The notes below the pieces were generated by a model. That model was not told the DNA's origin. It did not search any database and saw only the letters and a program-made list of their open reading frames with translations. DNA of 63,911 bases, the filler included, from Lenisia limosa (lineage: Eukaryota; Protista; Breviatea), in the NCBI GenBank assembly GCA_001655205.1. It is 15 parts of 15 records of this genome, joined end to end, with 100 filler letters (N's around TTAATTAATTAA, not from the genome) between each part and the next. Parts side by side here need not be neighbours in the genome. Positions count along the whole stretch, not along the records: positions 58,738 to 60,532 come from LPNZ01008431.1; 14 more parts are not named here. One strand, given 5' to 3'. A program made the position numbers and the translations under genes. Positions 2,445 to 60,741 of this stretch are shown here, piece by piece (within the stretch, counting starts at the first letter, position 1; every line of letters begins with the position of its first letter).

Positions 2445-2829
2445 CGCCCCACGTTTAGGGTCTTGCTTGACAATGAAGCGGCCTCTGCGCGACTAACACC
2501 TGTGTGGGCGCCGTCGCTGTTGAACTGAAACGCGCCGCGGAGGAGGACTGCACGCAAGGCCTCGTCGAGCTGCTTACTGCGGCCGGTGGCGACGACCTCG
2601 GTTCAGGCGGTGTTGGCGGCCTGGTTGCGGTCCTGGAGGTCCTTAGAGCTTGGTAGTCCAGTTCGGCTGGGTTACGCCGGCAAGGTCGAAGACCTACATC
2701 TGGGGCATGTACTCGCGAATGAAGTCGGTGACACAGTCGCCGTAGGTGGCCGCCATGGCCTCGGCGACCACACTGGATATTCCAGGCGCCGGGGCACTTG
2801 CCGGAGATGGACGATCCGTTGCAGTCGGT
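2445..2829 (-). pseudogene. GC-rich disrupted coding-like segment
   Basis: Minus strand reads TDCNGSSISGKCPGAWNIQC, then after frameshifts AEAMAATYGDCVTDFIREYMPQM*VFDL... and KDLQDRNQAANTA*TEVV...; GC-ending codons, with in-frame TAG, TAA and TGA. Confidence 0.35.
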
Positions 2830-2929: not shown

Positions 2930-3452
2930 GGGGGGGGGGGGGGGTGAAACATGAAGGAATTGTTGATGAAGTGAAAAGAGAGTATGCCGGATTGACACGT
3001 GGAATAAAGGCTTGATAGGTGCTAAAGGCTTGAAGGCTTGATAGGATTGTGCGGAATCGCCAGTGGCCTTAACCCCCCCTCCCACAGCAGGTACAGAATG
3101 TGGCTGGCTTCTTACAGGTGCCCCATTTGCATGTGGGACAGGTGTCAATGTCAAGCCACTACAATGAGGTAATACAGATGTCAAAATGGCTCCACTATAA
3201 CGCGGATGATAAGGGTTTATCTAATCGTATCATGCCTATGCGTCACACTATGACATATCACGACAACTTTTTTCAACTACAACTTAAATCACTCTACACT
3301 GAATTGTGAAACTTTCTTTTTTTCAAAAAATGGCCTCACCTATTGAAAATGTCCAAAAGCTTCTAGAATGTTTGAAAAAAATGGCAATAGAATATCTTCC
3401 ATTTGAGGTAGCCATTATTAGTCTACTGTATCGATTTAGCAAGTAGAGTTAC

Positions 3453-6400
3453 ATTAAAAATCCGTTATTTGACTTATTCGAAGACTGGTTTCTCAAACCC
3501 CAGTGCAATACCTTCTGGACGGTTTCTTTAACGTAAAGCTCGAGGCTTTGCTGGGACGTAAGACAAGGCAACAATAGAAAATGAGGAAACAAGGATAATG
3601 GGACTCACTTCGAAGATAGATCTGATGGCTGCGTCTCCGACCAGGGCAGAAATATCGGCCAATGTGAAGGTGATGGCCACTGGGTTGTGCTGGATGCTCT
3701 CCTTCCACTTGGTCGTGTTCGTCTGGAGTGAGTCAGGAATTCTTCTTTTGAGAATGGAAAGGAATCCCTTCAATGGACTGGTTTGACGAGTGTTGCATAA
3801 TGTGGACAATAAGTTAAGGGTAGTTGAAATAAACATTGCATCCCTTCATTCTGCATTGGTCCCATTGATATTTCCTCGTTACCCCCCCCCCNNNNNNNNN
3901 NNNNNNNNNNNNNNNNNNNNNNNNNNNNNNNNNNNNNNNNNNNNNNNNNNNNNNNNNNNNNNNNNNNNNNNNNNNNNNNNNNNNNNNNNNNNNNNNNNNN
4001 NNNNNNNNNNNNNNNNNNNNNCTCCCCCACGAAGCAGTCAGGACCCGGCATGCCGCCGTCACAGGAGTTTCCGGCATTTTTTGCATGAGAAGTCCATGAT
4101 GCGGTGTGCGGCATTTTCTGGCCTGTCGTCACCTGGATGAAGTCGTTTTTCGCCTCGGTCTCAATTTGCTTGATCTACAGTTATGAAAAATGAGAACTTA
4201 TGAATGTATACTTGGGTTAGAAAACAAAGAGCGAACAGCGCGAAGGAAATTAAATAACCAAGAAGTTAAATCGTTATTAGTCCTTCCGACTACTCATGCT
4301 ATCTGAGTGAAACCTGGCAACATATAAGCACCCCCCAGTTTCACATATTCCACATGTATGTGAGCTTTACTGTAACACAAACCGCAATCCATTCCCCACG
4401 TTGAAAGGCTTAGAGCCAGGCCCAACGGGGCTGTGCATGATGTCGGTGTTGAACTTAGTCAGGTCCTCCATTACGCCGCCGTCCATCGTCGTGGCTGCGA
4501 AGGCCGTGCCCCAGTACTTGGGAGGTGAAGAGATTGTAATGTAATACTCATCAAGAATGTAAGTGTTCAATATATCATATCGATTATTTCTACATCCGAT
4601 TAAATGAGGACTGAAATTAGGATTCTTTTCACCCGAATGAGCATCAGTTTTTCGTTTTTTGGGAGTGTAGAGAGTCTGTGTATGAGCAAAGCGCAAAAAG
4701 AGAACATACATTACATATCATATCTATTATATCATATTTATGTATTCACACTTTCAATTTGGATCCCGATGCTTCAGCAGAGGTTTACCTTACCTTGATA
4801 AACCGCGCATAGATTATCTTGTTCTCATCGGAGTCGTAAGAGGGAGGAAGACTGAGAAGCGCCTGTTTACAGAATCGATCAAGCTTGAAGTTCCAATCCT
4901 GAGGGGGGGGGGTAAAATTGGAAAATTTATGAAACAAAAAAAACCCAAATCAACTCTGTTGGCTGACAACCCACAACGGTTGATAACACAGCCCAGGCCA
5001 GTCGCTTTTGTAGCACCGCATCCTACCGTCAAGATAATGACACATTGCTTTTTGAAGCCCCCAGAATCACAATTCACGTAACGAGAGTTTCAAAGAATTA
5101 AACTCATTTCTTCAAAATAACAAGGCACGCAGCATCGTTTGCCCTCTCAAACATCCAACATGGATTACCTTGGTGTCAGGGTCTCTTTGAAGTTCGAGTT
5201 GATAGAGTTTATGGTGGTTCTGAATGGATCAATGAAGGGTAAAAATAATAAAAACAAATATTCTACTCAGAAACTAGTTATTCAGAATTATGCAAAAAGA
5301 ATTGGTGTCATGACCCCAAAGGAAAGTACGACGTTATCATGCTGTATCAAGGCCTTAAGCAAGAAGGCCACCACTGACTCCGTAGGCTGTTTATATCATT
5401 GTTTTGTGTTCCATGTGGGCATCAAACACCCGCCACCTGTGCAACAGTCAGGCCATTTCCTCCATCAAAGAACTTGGTGCTGACTGCCTCGAACGAAGGC
5501 TGGTTCACAAACACACCTGCCATCCCTACAATCATGACTGATTATAGTGGCATTTTACCGTCAATAAATAGGATTACCAGTTCAATTCACTTCATATCAT
5601 TATACATAATCGGTCCTATATCATGTTGCTAATAAAAACATATTGCAACTAGCTGTTAATACCCAATGGGAATAAAAATGACCATCCAATTAGTTGACTT
5701 ACAACTCCGTGCGCACAACACCCCCCTATACCTATACCGTATGCTGGGGAGGCAGCAGAAGCTGTGTGCACAGAGTTGTAAGGCAAATGATTGGGTGAAT
5801 TAATATTATTCTACAATCCAGTACCTCTTATAAGCGTGATGGTGTGGATGGCTTCGGCCAGATACATCCTTATTTATTATTTCTCATTGCTATATGATAT
5901 ATACCGCAAACCAAGGCCGTTCTGTCCCCAAGTCAGGACCTCCTTGACGTAGTGGCTGATGCTCTCGAAGCCCAAAACCGCCATTTCAGGCATGTCAATT
6001 CCGGTTGAGGAGGGTTCGAAGGTAGCCTGAGGAATAAGAACTTCCCGTTTGCAGCATTAGTCTCGTTTGAAAATAGGATCAAAAACGACAAGAATGGCCC
6101 CAAATAATCCCTAGCAGCGACTTCGCTGAGAACAAACAACGTCTTGCACGGCATACCTGGTCCGGCAGCCTAAACACCTCTCCCTTGATGTTGGTCCAAG
6201 TGCGGTTGTTTTCGAAGGTCAACTCAACAACTGAAGGGTTAAATGAGTTCAGTAGAGGGAATAAAAACATATAAAGCTGTAATCAATACTGCTATTTCTT
6301 ATATGATATATTATACATAATTATATTAATACATTCAGGTTTTATAAAAAAAGGCGATACCACCTAGCCAAAGCCGTACACCATCTAGATATTAATTCAC

Positions 6401-9400
6401 CCAATCATTTGCCTTAAAACATAATTAATCAAAGTTAATCTCTTAATATACTATATGATAGTATCCAATAATAAAATATACTGCAAGACCATCTGTATCT
6501 TCGGCCTCCTCTGGTTTTAGGTTTTTAAGTGATCCACCATTTGCTAAGAAGCAAAAACTGTATCGGGGCAAAAAAAAAGTATCAAAAAAAAAAAGGGGGA
6601 GGGAGAGACTATTCACAATTTGATCATTTTGCTGAGATACCTGCTACCCTTTAACTTGAAGCAATTTTCAAAAAATCCAAACTCTCAAAATAGCAGTTTT
6701 TTTTAAAAAAATATGCATTGATTCGAGACGAGGGGAATAAATACACATTAGGACCACATGATTTAAGGCGTCTGGAGGGTCTTGGTCTCTTCATCTCGGG
6801 GATGACACAGGACTTTGCAGTTTCAAAGTGTGGAGCGCTGTAGTCCTCTTCATTGGCAACGCCTCAATGGACACTTAACCGTGCCAAATGTACTGGACCA
6901 ATTACCTCTCATTAATCTGAAAAGAAGAGCTGAAAAAGGAGCAGTTTTTAAGAAATAAAGATGGCCATGGGCGGAGTCGAACCGCGACAGAGTGTATACC
7001 CAAGCGGTCACCTAACTACTTGAGGATCGATCAGTAAATAGAAAAACAAGTTTGAAAGAACAAGCTAGTGTCTTCTGAAAAACATTCAATACATTGTTTT
7101 TTTTCTGCAAGTGTAGAAACGTTTATTTATAAAGGAGAGGAAACAAACTAGTACACAAAATTTTAAAAGGACAAAATGTATTTATCGTAAAAACATTCAG
7201 TGAAACAAAGATAAAAGAGCCATAGGAGAGCGGCGGCGGAGTTGCAAATGAAGAAAAAACTATGATCGGCAATGAATCTGCTTCATCTTTATTTAAGACA
7301 ATTTGGCCGAGTTGGTCTAAGGCGTCACGTTAAGGTCGTGATCTCTCCGGAGGCGTGAGTTCGAATCTCACAGTTGTCAATTTTTTTCCTCGTTCAATTT
7401 TTTGCCGATTGTTTGTATCTTTTCTTTTGTTGTGGATTTTTTCCCTTTATTTTCCAAAAAAATTGAATAAAATTGTGAAAGCAGTAAAAATGACCCTTCG
7501 GGATAATTCCTCAGGATAGTTTTCATATTAATCCAGGCATAAAATTCTGAAAATAGGTAAAGTTGACCTAGAATGTATTGTAATAAGGCTAAAATGGCAA
7601 TATATAGACAATATGACAATGTTGGTTGTGCGTGGTTACAATGGTCTTTAAATTTGGTAAAAAAAAAGCGAAAACCCAAAAACCTCCAAAAGTGGAACAC
7701 CCCCCTGAGTCGGAAAAATGGGCATTTAAAAATGTTAACTCGAAGATGTTTCATATTGGAAAAGTACCTACCCAAATATCACGAAGGGTCATTTAGATTA
7801 CTTACTCATGACTTTGAGCAAAAAGCGGCAATTTGTAACTCGTCGGCGGAAAACGTAAAAATGCGACGCCGTACGAAAATCCGACTAAAAAGAGCTTTAC
7901 ATAATCCACCTATATTCGGATCTCCGTGACAATTTTCCTTCTGCTTTAAGGCCGCCCTCGGGGTAAAAGTTGTTACGGAAATTAGTTAATATTTAATCTT
8001 AAATATTTTTGATAATGATAGGTAAAATTAAGGATGTAGCAAGCCAAAGACAGCTTCAAAGAACAAAAAAGCTCTTTAAAATCCTCAGATTTTGTGCAAA
8101 GGTTGCTGGATGGGTACAAAAATAACAATGGTGCAAATGTACGTAATACATCAAAGCTTAAGCGAAATGGATGAGAAATAGGAGTGGAAAGAGACGAGAA
8201 CCGAGCCAAAAATTATAAGTAATTTGATTTGCTTGTTTTTTTTTGTTGAAGGAACAAATTTAAAGTAAGCTAAATCTACGTAAAAACTTTAACCCCTAAG
8301 CCAATGTTAAAATACTATTCTGCAAAAAAACAAAATAAAGTACAGACCAGAGAAACAAAGAAAAAACTTGCAAATCCAACCCCACCTGGGAGTTTGATAT
8401 TGCCAGATGAAATGTCGACTCCCATTCCCACCATTGCTGGCAGGGGCTAAGGAATGAGGAGGGATGGCAACAGGAATTTATGGGATAACCAAATGGTTTT
8501 TTTTTGAACAAGAGAAATAATAACATAAATCTAGGGGAAACAAATAAATACATGGGGGTACCATAAACATAAGATTAATATTAATATTAGAAGCCAACTC
8601 AGATAATTGTCGCAGATACTCCCAATAATTTTTGTGGGTATCCCAATAAATGGTAATAATTTCATTAGAAATTTCAAGTTTACAAATTTACGGTTCGTTC
8701 TGTATGCCCACGTTAAAAACTCCACCCCTCCCACGTTAAAAACTCCACCCCTCCCACGTTAATTTTCTTTTTGAGCTCCTTCTGATACTCTGTACTGTTA
8801 CTAGCAAAGTAGTCAAGCTGTTTGAGAAGCTTAGCTGTCGGTCCTGATACCCATTGGTCACAGAACTTTCCTAAAAAGGTAAGATGGAACTAAATTGACA
8901 AAAAGGGAACCAAATCCAACTCATCAAAAAATGGCCCACCTCCCCATCCGAGGTAGCAGTTGGTGCATTCAGTACACTGTTTGTTGGGGTCCCCACCATG
9001 TTTGCAAAGCTCGGCTNNNNNNNNNNNNNNNNNNNNNNNNNNNNNNNNNNNNNNNNNNNNNNNNNNNNNNNNNNNNNNNNNNNNNNNNNNNNNNNNNNNN
9101 NNNNNNNNNNNNNNNNNNNNNNAAGCTTGGGGAACATATGTGAGGAAAGCCACAAAAAAAAGTGATCATTTTTCATAACATTTGAAACAGAATGTGTAAA
9201 CTATATCGATCAATATTATGTAATACAGTACATTTGAATATAATATCATATAAATACGTATATGATATATAATATTATACATAAAAAACAATGTTACACA
9301 ATCTTAATATAGACACCGAGTCTGAACCGAATTACGCTCACACCCCAAATCGTAGGATGGTTGCGAGTTCATGGAGTCCAACCAAATAGACTGAATCCGC

Positions 9401-58637: not shown

Positions 58638-58901
58638 NNNNNNNNNNNNNNNNNNNNNNNNNNNNNNNNNNNNNNNNNNNNTTAATTAATTAANNNNNNN
58701 NNNNNNNNNNNNNNNNNNNNNNNNNNNNNNNNNNNNNGTATGAAACAAAAAATGCGGAGGCCAACCTCCCCCTTCCCCCCATACACACACATAATATAAT
58801 ATAGCAATGAAAAAATATAATACAAAAGGTTGTATCTGACACGCACACTCCTACACACAATAGAAGAGGATACACCCCTCCCTATATTATATCATAACAA
58901 C

Positions 58902-58988
58902 TGGGGCTTTACTTCGGTTCAATAAAAGACTGAATTTTTCGATAAATCCTAGAAAACTAGGTATTTTTCGAACCGAAGTGAAGCCCTA
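58902..58988. mobile_element. Family A MITE
   Basis: TGGGGCTTTACTTCGGTTC...TTCGAACCGAAGTGAAGCCCTA; flanks ataacaac/gtaacatc (6/8 match). Confidence 0.85.
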
Positions 58989-58999
58989 GTAACATCCCC

Positions 59000-60461
59000 C
59001 CTCCCACGTTGCCTCTGTGGAAGGAATCCCTCGGAGGGCCCGGTGCAGGGCCATGGCTGCGGCCGACCTGGGGGGCAAACCCGGCGCTAAGGCCCTTGGG
59101 ACGTGCCCACTCTCTGGGGGGGGGGGGNNNNNNNNNNNNNNNNNNNNNNNNNNNNNNNNNNNNNNNNNNNNNNNNNNNNNNNNNNNNNNNNNNNNNNNNN
59201 NNNNNATCACAAGCTGATGAACAGGATGACAATCATAAACACAAACACAGAGGCCAAGCAGAGAAACAATGCTGTATAAGATTGAAGTTTTGTGGCCCCA
59301 TTAAAAGATCTAAAAACCACCCCGCTAACACGACAACGATGTTGCCGTTGACTGTGGTGGTACTGAGCTTCTTAAGGGCCATAAAAGCGTCCTTCTGGTT
59401 CTAAAATCGTAATTGCAAGAGGGCAACGAAAGCCAGAACGGAGGAAATCGTATAGCTCTGGTCCGAATACCGAGGTACTCGCACAACCTATGTTGTTCGC
59501 ATTGGCCCGGATGATCCGTCTCAACATCCGTCGGTCCCCAGCGGCTGCTGCAGAACACCAAAAAACGCGCCCTCCGGGCCCAAAACAGAGCCAATTCAAG
59601 AACTGAACTCCGAGATGAACCCGCGGACGACCAAGGGGGCTATTCCTGAAATTGACCCCTGATAAGAGCGTAGGCGTAGCAAGAACAAAAGTGGTAATTT
59701 TGCTCTCACATAGCACCGACGAAGCCATATCAGGCGAAAACTCAAGGGGGAAACCCCCGGGCTCTGGTACCCCGCGCTGCCAGCTGGAACCCGAGAATGG
59801 AGCCGGGCAGAGCCGGGCCTCGGGGCAAGGATAAGACTCATCATTGCTATATAAGGAAGGTGGGAGCGAAGTCCCGCCCTGGGTACCTTGAAGGTCACGA
59901 AGGCGAAGGACTTGGACTTTCCGTTGCGGTCGCAGATCACTTCAGCATCCATAACGTTTCCTGGGGGAGTAAAACGGAAATTTCGATGAATATTGGCGTA
60001 AAGGTACTAATCACGAACCGAATAATCTGAAACTCCAAACAAACAAAAGGGGGGGGGGGGTAAAATATACAGCCCTTGGTGATGAAATATTGTTTGGAAA
60101 TGGGGTGAGTACAAGTCAATGCATGTCTCATAGATTTGGCTTCCCTACGGTCCGAAAAAGACCGTCTAAATATCGATATTTATCGAGAAATTCCGTCATT
60201 TTTGGGAACGTAGCGAAGCCCAAATAATAGAGTATATCATGCGACTTAATTAATCCAGACAATTATCATTTTCTGTAAAAAGGGTTTTTCATCCCTAACT
60301 TAATAAAATATCAATCTATTATTGTAAAAAAAACAAAAAAAAAATTGTTCCTCAAAACTATGCTTACCGTAGTGGACGAAGACTTCCCTGATTTGCTCGG
60401 AGGTGAAAGAGGGGTCAAGACGGGTCACGAAGAGGGTCTTGGCGTCCGGGTTGGGAGGGGG
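59000..60461 (-). CDS. RRM-domain RNA-binding protein
   Basis: KTLFVTRLDPSFTSEQIREVFVHYG (RNP2) splices to NVMDAEVICDRNGKSKSFAFVTFK (RNP1, exon 59887-59960); Gly/Pro-rich downstream exon. Confidence 0.82.
59961..60038 (-). repeat. Family D repeat, intact, forming the 3' end of an RRM-gene intron
   Basis: Minus strand TTGGAGTTTCAGATTATTCGGTTCGTGATTAGTACCTTTACGCCAATATTCATCGAAATTTCCGTTTTACTCCCCCAG|GAAACG. Confidence 0.9.
60136..60222. mobile_element. Family A2 MITE
   Basis: GGCTTCCCTACGGTCCGAAAAAGACC...GGGAACGTAGCGAAGCCCA. Confidence 0.82.
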
Positions 60462-60741
60462 CTGAGGCGTAAACCGAAGGAAATTTCGATAAAATAAAAT
60501 AATAAAACAAAAAAAAGGTAGCTGCTACGGGGNNNNNNNNNNNNNNNNNNNNNNNNNNNNNNNNNNNNNNNNNNNNTTAATTAATTAANNNNNNNNNNNN
60601 NNNNNNNNNNNNNNNNNNNNNNNNNNNNNNNNGTTCGTGATGGTGTAGACGGCTTCGGCCAGATACTACCTTTTTTATTTCTCATTGATATATAGTATAA
60701 TGTATGTTTTTAACATTCCAAAAAACTCACAAAACTCACAC

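Follow-up and report, generated by a model that had tools for sequence, protein, structure and literature searches.

The minus-strand gene at 58738-60532 of the Lenisia limosa DNA analyzed here (63,911 nucleotides at full length, referred to as the window) raises the question what kind of repeat can end, time and again, exactly at a splice acceptor. An earlier note had described a repeat family, D, that ends at acceptors and shares its termini with an otherwise unrelated family, B, and had proposed that both are moved by one machinery recognizing an inverted GGAGT/ACTCC end. The gene is eukaryotic, and its spliced peptide matches the RNA-recognition motif of Pfam (RRM_1, E 5e-18). An RNA contig of 1,266 nt (run X2, record 9) joins exactly the three exons that encode this peptide, all on the minus strand: exon A (60461-60368), exon B (59960-59887) and exon C (59400-59330). 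Absent from the contig are 59961-60367 (intron 1, 407 nt; joint 60368 to 59960) and 59401-59886 (intron 2, 486 nt; joint 59887 to 59400), both with GT..AG limits on the minus strand, and the contig continues from 59330 into 59113 across a gap of N's, its loose end at 59330 being followed by 59084-59113. The introns and acceptors cited by the earlier note are real. Intron 3 ends with C12 and AG (59114-59127, minus strand, the AG at 59115-59114), as read from the sequence and from the continuation of the RNA contig; this acceptor abuts the gap, and its C12 is probably the tail of another unit hidden inside. Intron 2 is as rich in G+C as the exons (53-60%), the other introns having about 35-40%, and homology to D, to B or to a hairpin MITE family (H, see below) was found nowhere within it (59401-59886).

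Intron 1 contains, from 5' to 3': 145 nt of unique sequence, a copy of MITE H, a degenerate unit that ends with TATATTTTAC and C12, and a copy of D, so that the intron finishes, on the minus strand, as ...C12 TTTTGTTTGTTTGGAGTTTCAG...ATCGAAATTTCCGTTTTAC T CCCCC AG before exon B, which lies directly downstream of D. The D copy (59963-60048, minus strand) was delimited by nhmmer with a model of the full-length element, by read depth and by its identity to a further copy (91%, contig L001 2202-2292). It is truncated at the 5' side and covers model positions 139 to about 220-224 of 224. It reads TTTTGTTTGTTTGGAGTTTCAG...CCGTTTTACTCCCCC and consists of a T-rich start, TTTGGAGTTTCAG... and a 3' module, ATCGAAATTTCC(-TTC)G; its end is made up of TTTTAC (59974-59969), a T (59968) and a C5 tail (59967-59963). 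The AG that follows (59962-59961, 8 nt past TTTTAC) is the acceptor used in RNA (joint 59960|60368, CT..AC on the plus strand), and since the RNA joins 60368 to 59960, D ends exactly at an acceptor in use, as the earlier note had claimed. The stretch is matched by 2,685 contigs of DNA run X1, and over 59971-60060 their summed depth is 97,000-127,000 vs about 30 on the unique flanks, a ratio of roughly 3,000-4,000 that is not a copy number and indicates a very abundant repeat. Directly in front of D lies the tail of the older, degenerate unit (60049-60070, minus strand; TATATTTTAC plus C12), and D begins immediately behind its C-run, as was also recovered in the survey of stacked units described below. 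The joints 60043 to 60326 had suggested that D carries the 5' end of intron 1 (GTAAGCATAG...) along with it, a candidate that was rejected because this end is shared with other loci only through a T-run.

The second D copy that had been named, at acceptor 60462, is real too, in reduced form. The segment 60462-60490 (minus strand) holds an exact ATCGAAATTTCCTTCG (60490-60475) followed by GTTTACGCCTCAG, i.e. GTTTAC, GCCTC and AG, and then by exon A, with which the RNA contig begins at 60461, so that the acceptor is that of the upstream intron. What is present there is the 16-nt 3' module, stripped of everything 5' of it, and not a whole copy; it was recognized by 16-mer counting, by the RNA and as a direct repeat (D2). 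Allowing at most 2 mismatches, the 16-mer ATCGAAATTTCCTTCG has 18 matches in the 151 kb described below vs 0.15 expected by chance, 14 of them within D copies and 4 alone.

Further copies were then gathered. Exact-pattern scans with a 25-mer of D and with its 22-nt 3' module gave no match in JGI metagenomes, IMG/VR or GTDB genomes, and D was present only in the source runs X1 and X2. The single open reading frame of D was then translated and used as a query. A word-indexed protein search with this 64-aa ORF returned one match, a profile of the frame retrieved 95 representative read-through ORFs at E<=1e-3, and a protein search for an ortholog of the window's own ORF found none. The D ORFs that were looked up (P0001 and 20 others) all came from one independent ENA metagenome assembly, ERZ3820729. 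From these look-ups ten contigs were drawn (L001-L010, 149.7 kb in total; counts are given over 151 kb), which yielded 20 copies of D and 24 of B. Eight of the ten contigs were reached via an ORF that runs through D, which biases the sample towards copies that precede open exon sequence, and the copies outside this selection were therefore counted separately. The ENA gene calls on L002-L004 and L006-L010 used genetic code 4 (TGA = Trp), which accounts for the long false ORFs through intronic repeats, and P0080 matches under table 4 only. For annotation this means that the one open frame of D yields many false ORFs in metagenome gene calls. The C-runs matter for assembly as well: the gap in the window (59128-59205) begins right past G12 (C12 as read along the gene), and L001 and L009 have contig ends at such runs too, so the homopolymer tails seem to break assemblies.

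The alignment of these copies defined the true ends of both families. Full-length D measures 224 nt, starts with (G)TAYGTTTGGGTGATCAAGCGG or (G)TAYGTTTGGGTGATCAAGCGGTGGTGGGACTC and ends with ATCGAAATTTCCTTCGTTTTAC(T) followed by C4-16, in short GTAYGTTTGGG... and ...TTTTAC(T)Cn. Nearly all matches (19 of the 20) terminate at model positions 218-223, so that the 3' end is fixed, and the 5' end is a graded ladder with starts at positions 2, 2, 2, 19, 20, 27, 42, 54, 71, 99, 106, 117, 133, 134, 136, 139, 139, 152, 162 and 176. Family B, of about 150 nt (GTACGCTGGAGTGATGGGATGCGG ... GTCAGCCAACAGAGTTGATTTGGGC ... AAATTTTCCAATTTTAC(T) plus Cn), has a fixed 3' end and a 5' truncation ladder of the same kind in its 24 matches, and graded 5' truncation with a constant 3' end, a property by which SINEs and non-LTR retroposons are recognized, is thus found in D and in B alike. 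The common 3' end of the two families is ...AAATTTCC..TTTTAC(T) plus C4-16, and the likeness extends beyond TTTTAC (D ...AAATTTCCTTCGTTTTAC, B ...AAATTTTCCAATTTTAC, each followed by a variable C-run): it includes the last ~25 nt, an internal GGC..GGGCTTGTTT block and the full-length 5' ends (D GTAYGTTTGGGTGAT..., B GTACGCTGGAGTGAT...), which have the pattern GTAYG.T.G.GTGAT in common. No tRNA, 7SL, 5S or other match was obtained with Rfam and ARAGORN for D, B or their full-length forms, and the predicted RNA folds were no more stable than those of shuffled sequences (z +1.27 for full-length D, +1.12 for full-length B and -1.30 for the window copy).

These data uphold the central point of the earlier note, i.e. 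two dispersed, non-autonomous families anchored at acceptors, and revise its description of their ends. That B and D share termini holds for the real 5' and 3' ends; it does not hold for a GGAGT start, as TGGAGT lies internally in D, at about position 150 of the full-length model, nor for a constant T in ACTCC, as TTTTACT is about as frequent as TTTTACC and the T is found in about half of the copies. The GGAGT/ACTCC inverted terminus is in consequence best read as a coincidence for D, and inverted termini were absent from the true ends of both families. The flanks of all 44 copies were inspected for a target-site duplication, which the note had hoped to define, and no duplication of fixed length or other consistent form emerged; the sole recurrent flank was a C-run of variable length. 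Several copies (the window copy and L006 1411 among them) have such a C-run at either side, where it is inseparable from a tail, and the same applies to duplications. The search for a longer, autonomous element with the same ends was likewise negative within the 151 kb reached, as was that for a transposon-type ORF or a reverse transcriptase; a long ORF beside the full-length D of L010, considered as a reverse transcriptase, encodes an E/K-rich low-complexity protein instead. That D and B are moved by one machinery is a reasonable inference from their common ends and their head-to-tail stacking.

We then inspected where the copies lie. For 13 of the 18 matches to the first D model in the 151 kb, a C-run is followed by an AG within 7-36 nt and then by GC-rich open sequence, a test that is passed by a fraction of 0.21 of random AGs. 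Among the nine D copies outside the ORF selection, five are clearly at acceptor-like sites and two more are so less clearly or via a following B unit; the four minus-strand B copies of L005, also unselected, all end with Cn-AG directly ahead of exon-like sequence. Use of the 3' splice site behind an element is documented twice, by RNA for the window AG and by homology for L003, where the acceptor 1341|1342 follows a B tail (...CTTTACTC11TTATCCACTAG) and precedes an exon encoding GIVKPNVVFFGEDLP, and where the spliced peptide matches positions 100-160 of Pfam SIR2 without a break (E 1e-10). D and B were found within the introns of several genes: the RRM gene, this sirtuin gene and others. What separates the C-run from the AG ranges from nothing through T, GT or TTTC to as many as 25 nt. 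In many cases the AG thus belongs to the host, and some copies end in ..CTAG solely by way of the host acceptor. The few copies off acceptors are L003 838-895, an antisense fragment (L002 15588-15663) and a B copy that apparently does not precede an exon and is flanked by C14 upstream and C13 downstream (L006 1411-1539).

Strand and stacking were equally regular. The elements lie on the sense strand at all loci where this is determinable (the window by RNA, L003 by SIR2 homology, L008 and L005 by reading frames), and the L002 fragment is the only antisense one among 44 copies. Of D, 11 of 20 copies, and of B, 8 of 24, start directly behind the TTTTAC or C-run of another unit, with the junction falling anywhere from within TTTT to past 12 C. 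The window copy is one of these, behind TATATTTTAC and C12; B-D or D-B pairs are frequent, and the 616-nt intron of the sirtuin gene carries four sense units in a row (a D fragment, a repeat X, D and B).

Most D and B copies fill only the 3' part of an intron, and in most host introns 36-300 nt of unrelated sequence separate the 5' splice site from the element. A candidate for a whole intron was found in L008 (668-878), where an exon with a single open frame extends to 667 and is followed from 668 by D, starting at its internal GTGGAGGG: unspliced reading meets a stop inside D, and joining 667 to 879 restores the open frame, which would leave a 211-nt intron that is almost all D. By its reading frame this is the one case that points to a 5' splice site supplied by the element. 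For the B copy L005 4490-4346, the frame is kept from a GT at 4531 or at 4480 but not from the first GT of the element (4490); in L002, the reading frame likewise does not discriminate between alternative GT sites. Most copies thus sit in existing introns, of which they need not be the origin. At L009 and L010 a full-length D lies directly after a complete ...TTTAACGC..CAG acceptor-like motif, the upstream sequence of which belongs to repeat family X.

With moderate confidence we regard D and B as non-autonomous introner-type elements that are copied from their 3' end, probably via RNA, into the C-tracts at the ends of introns. The 3' module ends with TTTTAC, a putative branch point by its fit to the yUnAy consensus; the variable C-run behind it would form the polypyrimidine tract and an AG 0-25 nt further on the acceptor. 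For the acceptor of the host, use of which is given by RNA in the window, the D 3' module serves both as a branch-point-like motif and as a pyrimidine tract. New copies would be made from C-tailed RNA in the 3' to 5' direction, by target-primed reverse transcription or a similar process, and would integrate into C-tracts, in most cases either the tail of a unit already in place or a C-rich pyrimidine tract that immediately precedes an acceptor; such integration would explain the pile-up of sense-oriented copies at acceptors. Full-length units begin with GTAYG, which resembles a 5' splice site, and a unit whose truncation leaves an internal GT at its start could form a whole intron. Copying primed from the 3' end, we infer, best accounts for a 3' end that stays constant while the 5' ends form a ladder, for homopolymer tails that differ in length and for units stacked on tails, and the case for it is weakened because no partner element was found and because the fixed 3' end could stem from selection on a working splice signal rather than from the copying mechanism. 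Possible, albeit doubtful, is a more far-reaching version, according to which D and B would represent a class of retroposons with an excised-intron-like template (GTAYG...TTTTAC-Cn) and a C-tail that doubles as polypyrimidine tract: priming on C-tracts would aim the copies at the last nucleotides of an intron, where they would replace the host branch point and pyrimidine tract without disrupting the gene, and truncated copies that start with GT could found introns.

The arrangement at acceptors might also be produced by selection alone, if a repeat inserted anywhere and by any mechanism, and sense copies were purged except just before real acceptors. The 3' module does resemble a complete 3' splice signal and a few copies lie off acceptors (see above), but perhaps fifty times more insertions than survivors would be demanded. 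Left without explanation would be the units that start at variable points within the tail ahead of them and the all but complete lack of antisense copies in introns, where these are expected to be harmless; we consider this reading unlikely. Reverse splicing would return excised introns of the family to transcripts at AG|G-like sites, after which reverse transcription and recombination would carry them into the genome. This reading agrees with the sense-only copies, with the lack of inverted termini and target-site duplications, with full-length units that start with GTAYG and end with a C-run and AG, and with the full-length D directly behind ...TTTAACGC..CAG in L009 and L010. It predicts full-length copies with exact GT...AG limits and not a 5' truncation ladder, nor does it predict junctions inside C-runs without AG, and as the sequence upstream of D in L009 and L010 is itself repeat family X, the junction there may have been inherited and need not mark an insertion site. 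Reverse splicing is in our opinion quite improbable.

Two further readings bear on the ends themselves. The earlier note had conceded that the likeness between the ends of B and D might be chance or simply the host branch point and C-tract, in which case no mobility signal would be shared and the two families would have converged on what the host prefers. TTTAC or TTAC does occur ahead of acceptors that lack homology to either family (e.g. window 59401, CAATTACGATTTTAG). However, the 20 copies of D are homologous across 224 nt, the likeness of B and D continues past TTTTAC (AAATTTCC.. at the 3' side, GTAYG.T.G.GTGAT at the 5' side and GGC..GGGCTTGTTT inside), and introns that lack D and B have T-rich tracts, not C-runs; convergence is very improbable. 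We give the least credence, and hardly any, to B and D being non-autonomous DNA transposons of a MITE-like type, with GGAGT...ACTCC as their limits and one transposase that mobilizes both. The window copy and L001 do have GGAGT close to their 5' end and ACTCC at the opposite end, TGGAGT is found near the 5' end of B as well, and among introners whose source has been classified with confidence, DNA transposons with inverted repeats are the most frequent origin (PMC12130899), but in full-length D the TGGAGT lies some 150 nt inside and about half of the copies miss the T of ACTCC. The absence of target-site duplications weighs against this reading too, and cut-and-paste transposition does not predict the graded ladder and the stacking on tails; the ladder and the fixed 3' end speak instead for priming from the 3' end. 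Helitron features (5' TC, 3' hairpin plus CTRR, A/T insertion) are absent from the ends of D and B.

The reading of D and B as introner-type elements can be set against the known systems. Introners are intron-generating transposable elements, reported from Micromonas, Aureococcus, Symbiodinium, Polarella and others (PMC9860276, PMC12130899). Some of their families supply the 3' splice site while the 5' site comes from other sequence, as in an example from Symbiodinium (PMC9860276), families that lack inverted repeats or target-site duplications are on record (PMC9860276, PMC12130899), and about 72% of the known families have no assigned mechanism (PMC12130899). D and B are like introners in being high-copy, non-autonomous, located within genes, on the sense strand and a source of splice signals, and because they supply such signals they are grouped functionally with them; they differ in that introners are homologous across the whole intron, whereas most D and B copies fill its 3' part, are 5'-truncated, carry a variable C-run and are stacked. 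The introner-like elements of fungi (Dothideomycetes), cited in the introner literature, are comparable in lacking inverted repeats and target-site duplications and in forming whole introns that bring both splice signals themselves, but these reportedly fold more stably than ordinary introns, whereas the folds of D and B are no better than those of shuffled sequence. MITEs, such as H in intron 1 of the RRM gene, are equally short, abundant, non-autonomous and intronic; the inverted arms of H (27-44 nt) have no counterpart in D and B.

With SINEs and LINEs, which move by target-primed retroposition, D and B share the fixed 3' end, the 5' ladder, the homopolymer tail of variable length, the stacking on tails and the dimer-like B-D arrangement. 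Alu elements insert into the A-tails of older Alus and leave same-strand, head-to-tail stacks, a pattern that D and B repeat with C instead of A. The tail of SINE/LINE pairs is A-rich or a microsatellite, whereas that of D and B is poly-C (C4-C16), and unlike SINEs, D and B have no head of the Pol III type (tRNA, 7SL or 5S), no partner LINE was seen in the 151 kb and their orientation is strictly sense to genes. An introner-like mobile element is a known kind; the poly-C tail and the stacking at acceptors are unusual. Most introner families have no assigned mechanism; the trail left by D and B (3' module, C-tail, ladder and stacking) is unusually readable and points to copying from the 3' end with an inherent preference for the 3' ends of introns. 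If confirmed, it would describe a mobile element that spreads through genes cheaply, by usurping the acceptor signals of introns already present, and that occasionally creates introns.

Various other repeats were recovered around the copies of D and B. The hairpin MITE H of intron 1 (60138-60221, no strand assigned; depth ~61,800 in run X1) is separate from D and was recognized through an inverted repeat (I1) with 58904-58947. The arms of this family read GGGCTTCACTTCGGTTCGAAAAA..., a further copy in the window lies at 58900-58990 and six copies were found in L001 (e.g. 4283-4381 and 7732-7824); as H is a hairpin, it accounts for the weak matches of Rfam to miRNA-like precursors at 58894-58996. 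Repeat family X (L003 897-1095, L010 2855-3156, L009 ~8100-8162) ends with the acceptor-like TTTAACGC..CAG and abuts the GTAYGT start of a full-length D in three separate loci (L003, L009 and L010). A repeat with the core GTGATGGTGTGGACGGCTT(C/T)GG(C/T)CAGATAC is arranged in tandem at L001 7880-8059 and dispersed in introns of L005 (~1800-1860 and ~2600-2650, minus strand), and an intron of L005 contains an interstitial telomere-like (CCCTAA)3 run (~3570-3600, minus strand). Runs of G12-G14 occur at or just past candidate 5' splice sites, in L005 (4519-4530, GT G12) and L001 (5059-5072, GTT G14); these may be intronic or coding for Gly runs and may be related to C-tails on the opposite strand. 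Finally, L001 carries a tandem array with a unit of ~27 nt (CAGACCAATTTGTTGTTGCCTGATTTT) at 6480-6660, just downstream of the last exon of a gene.
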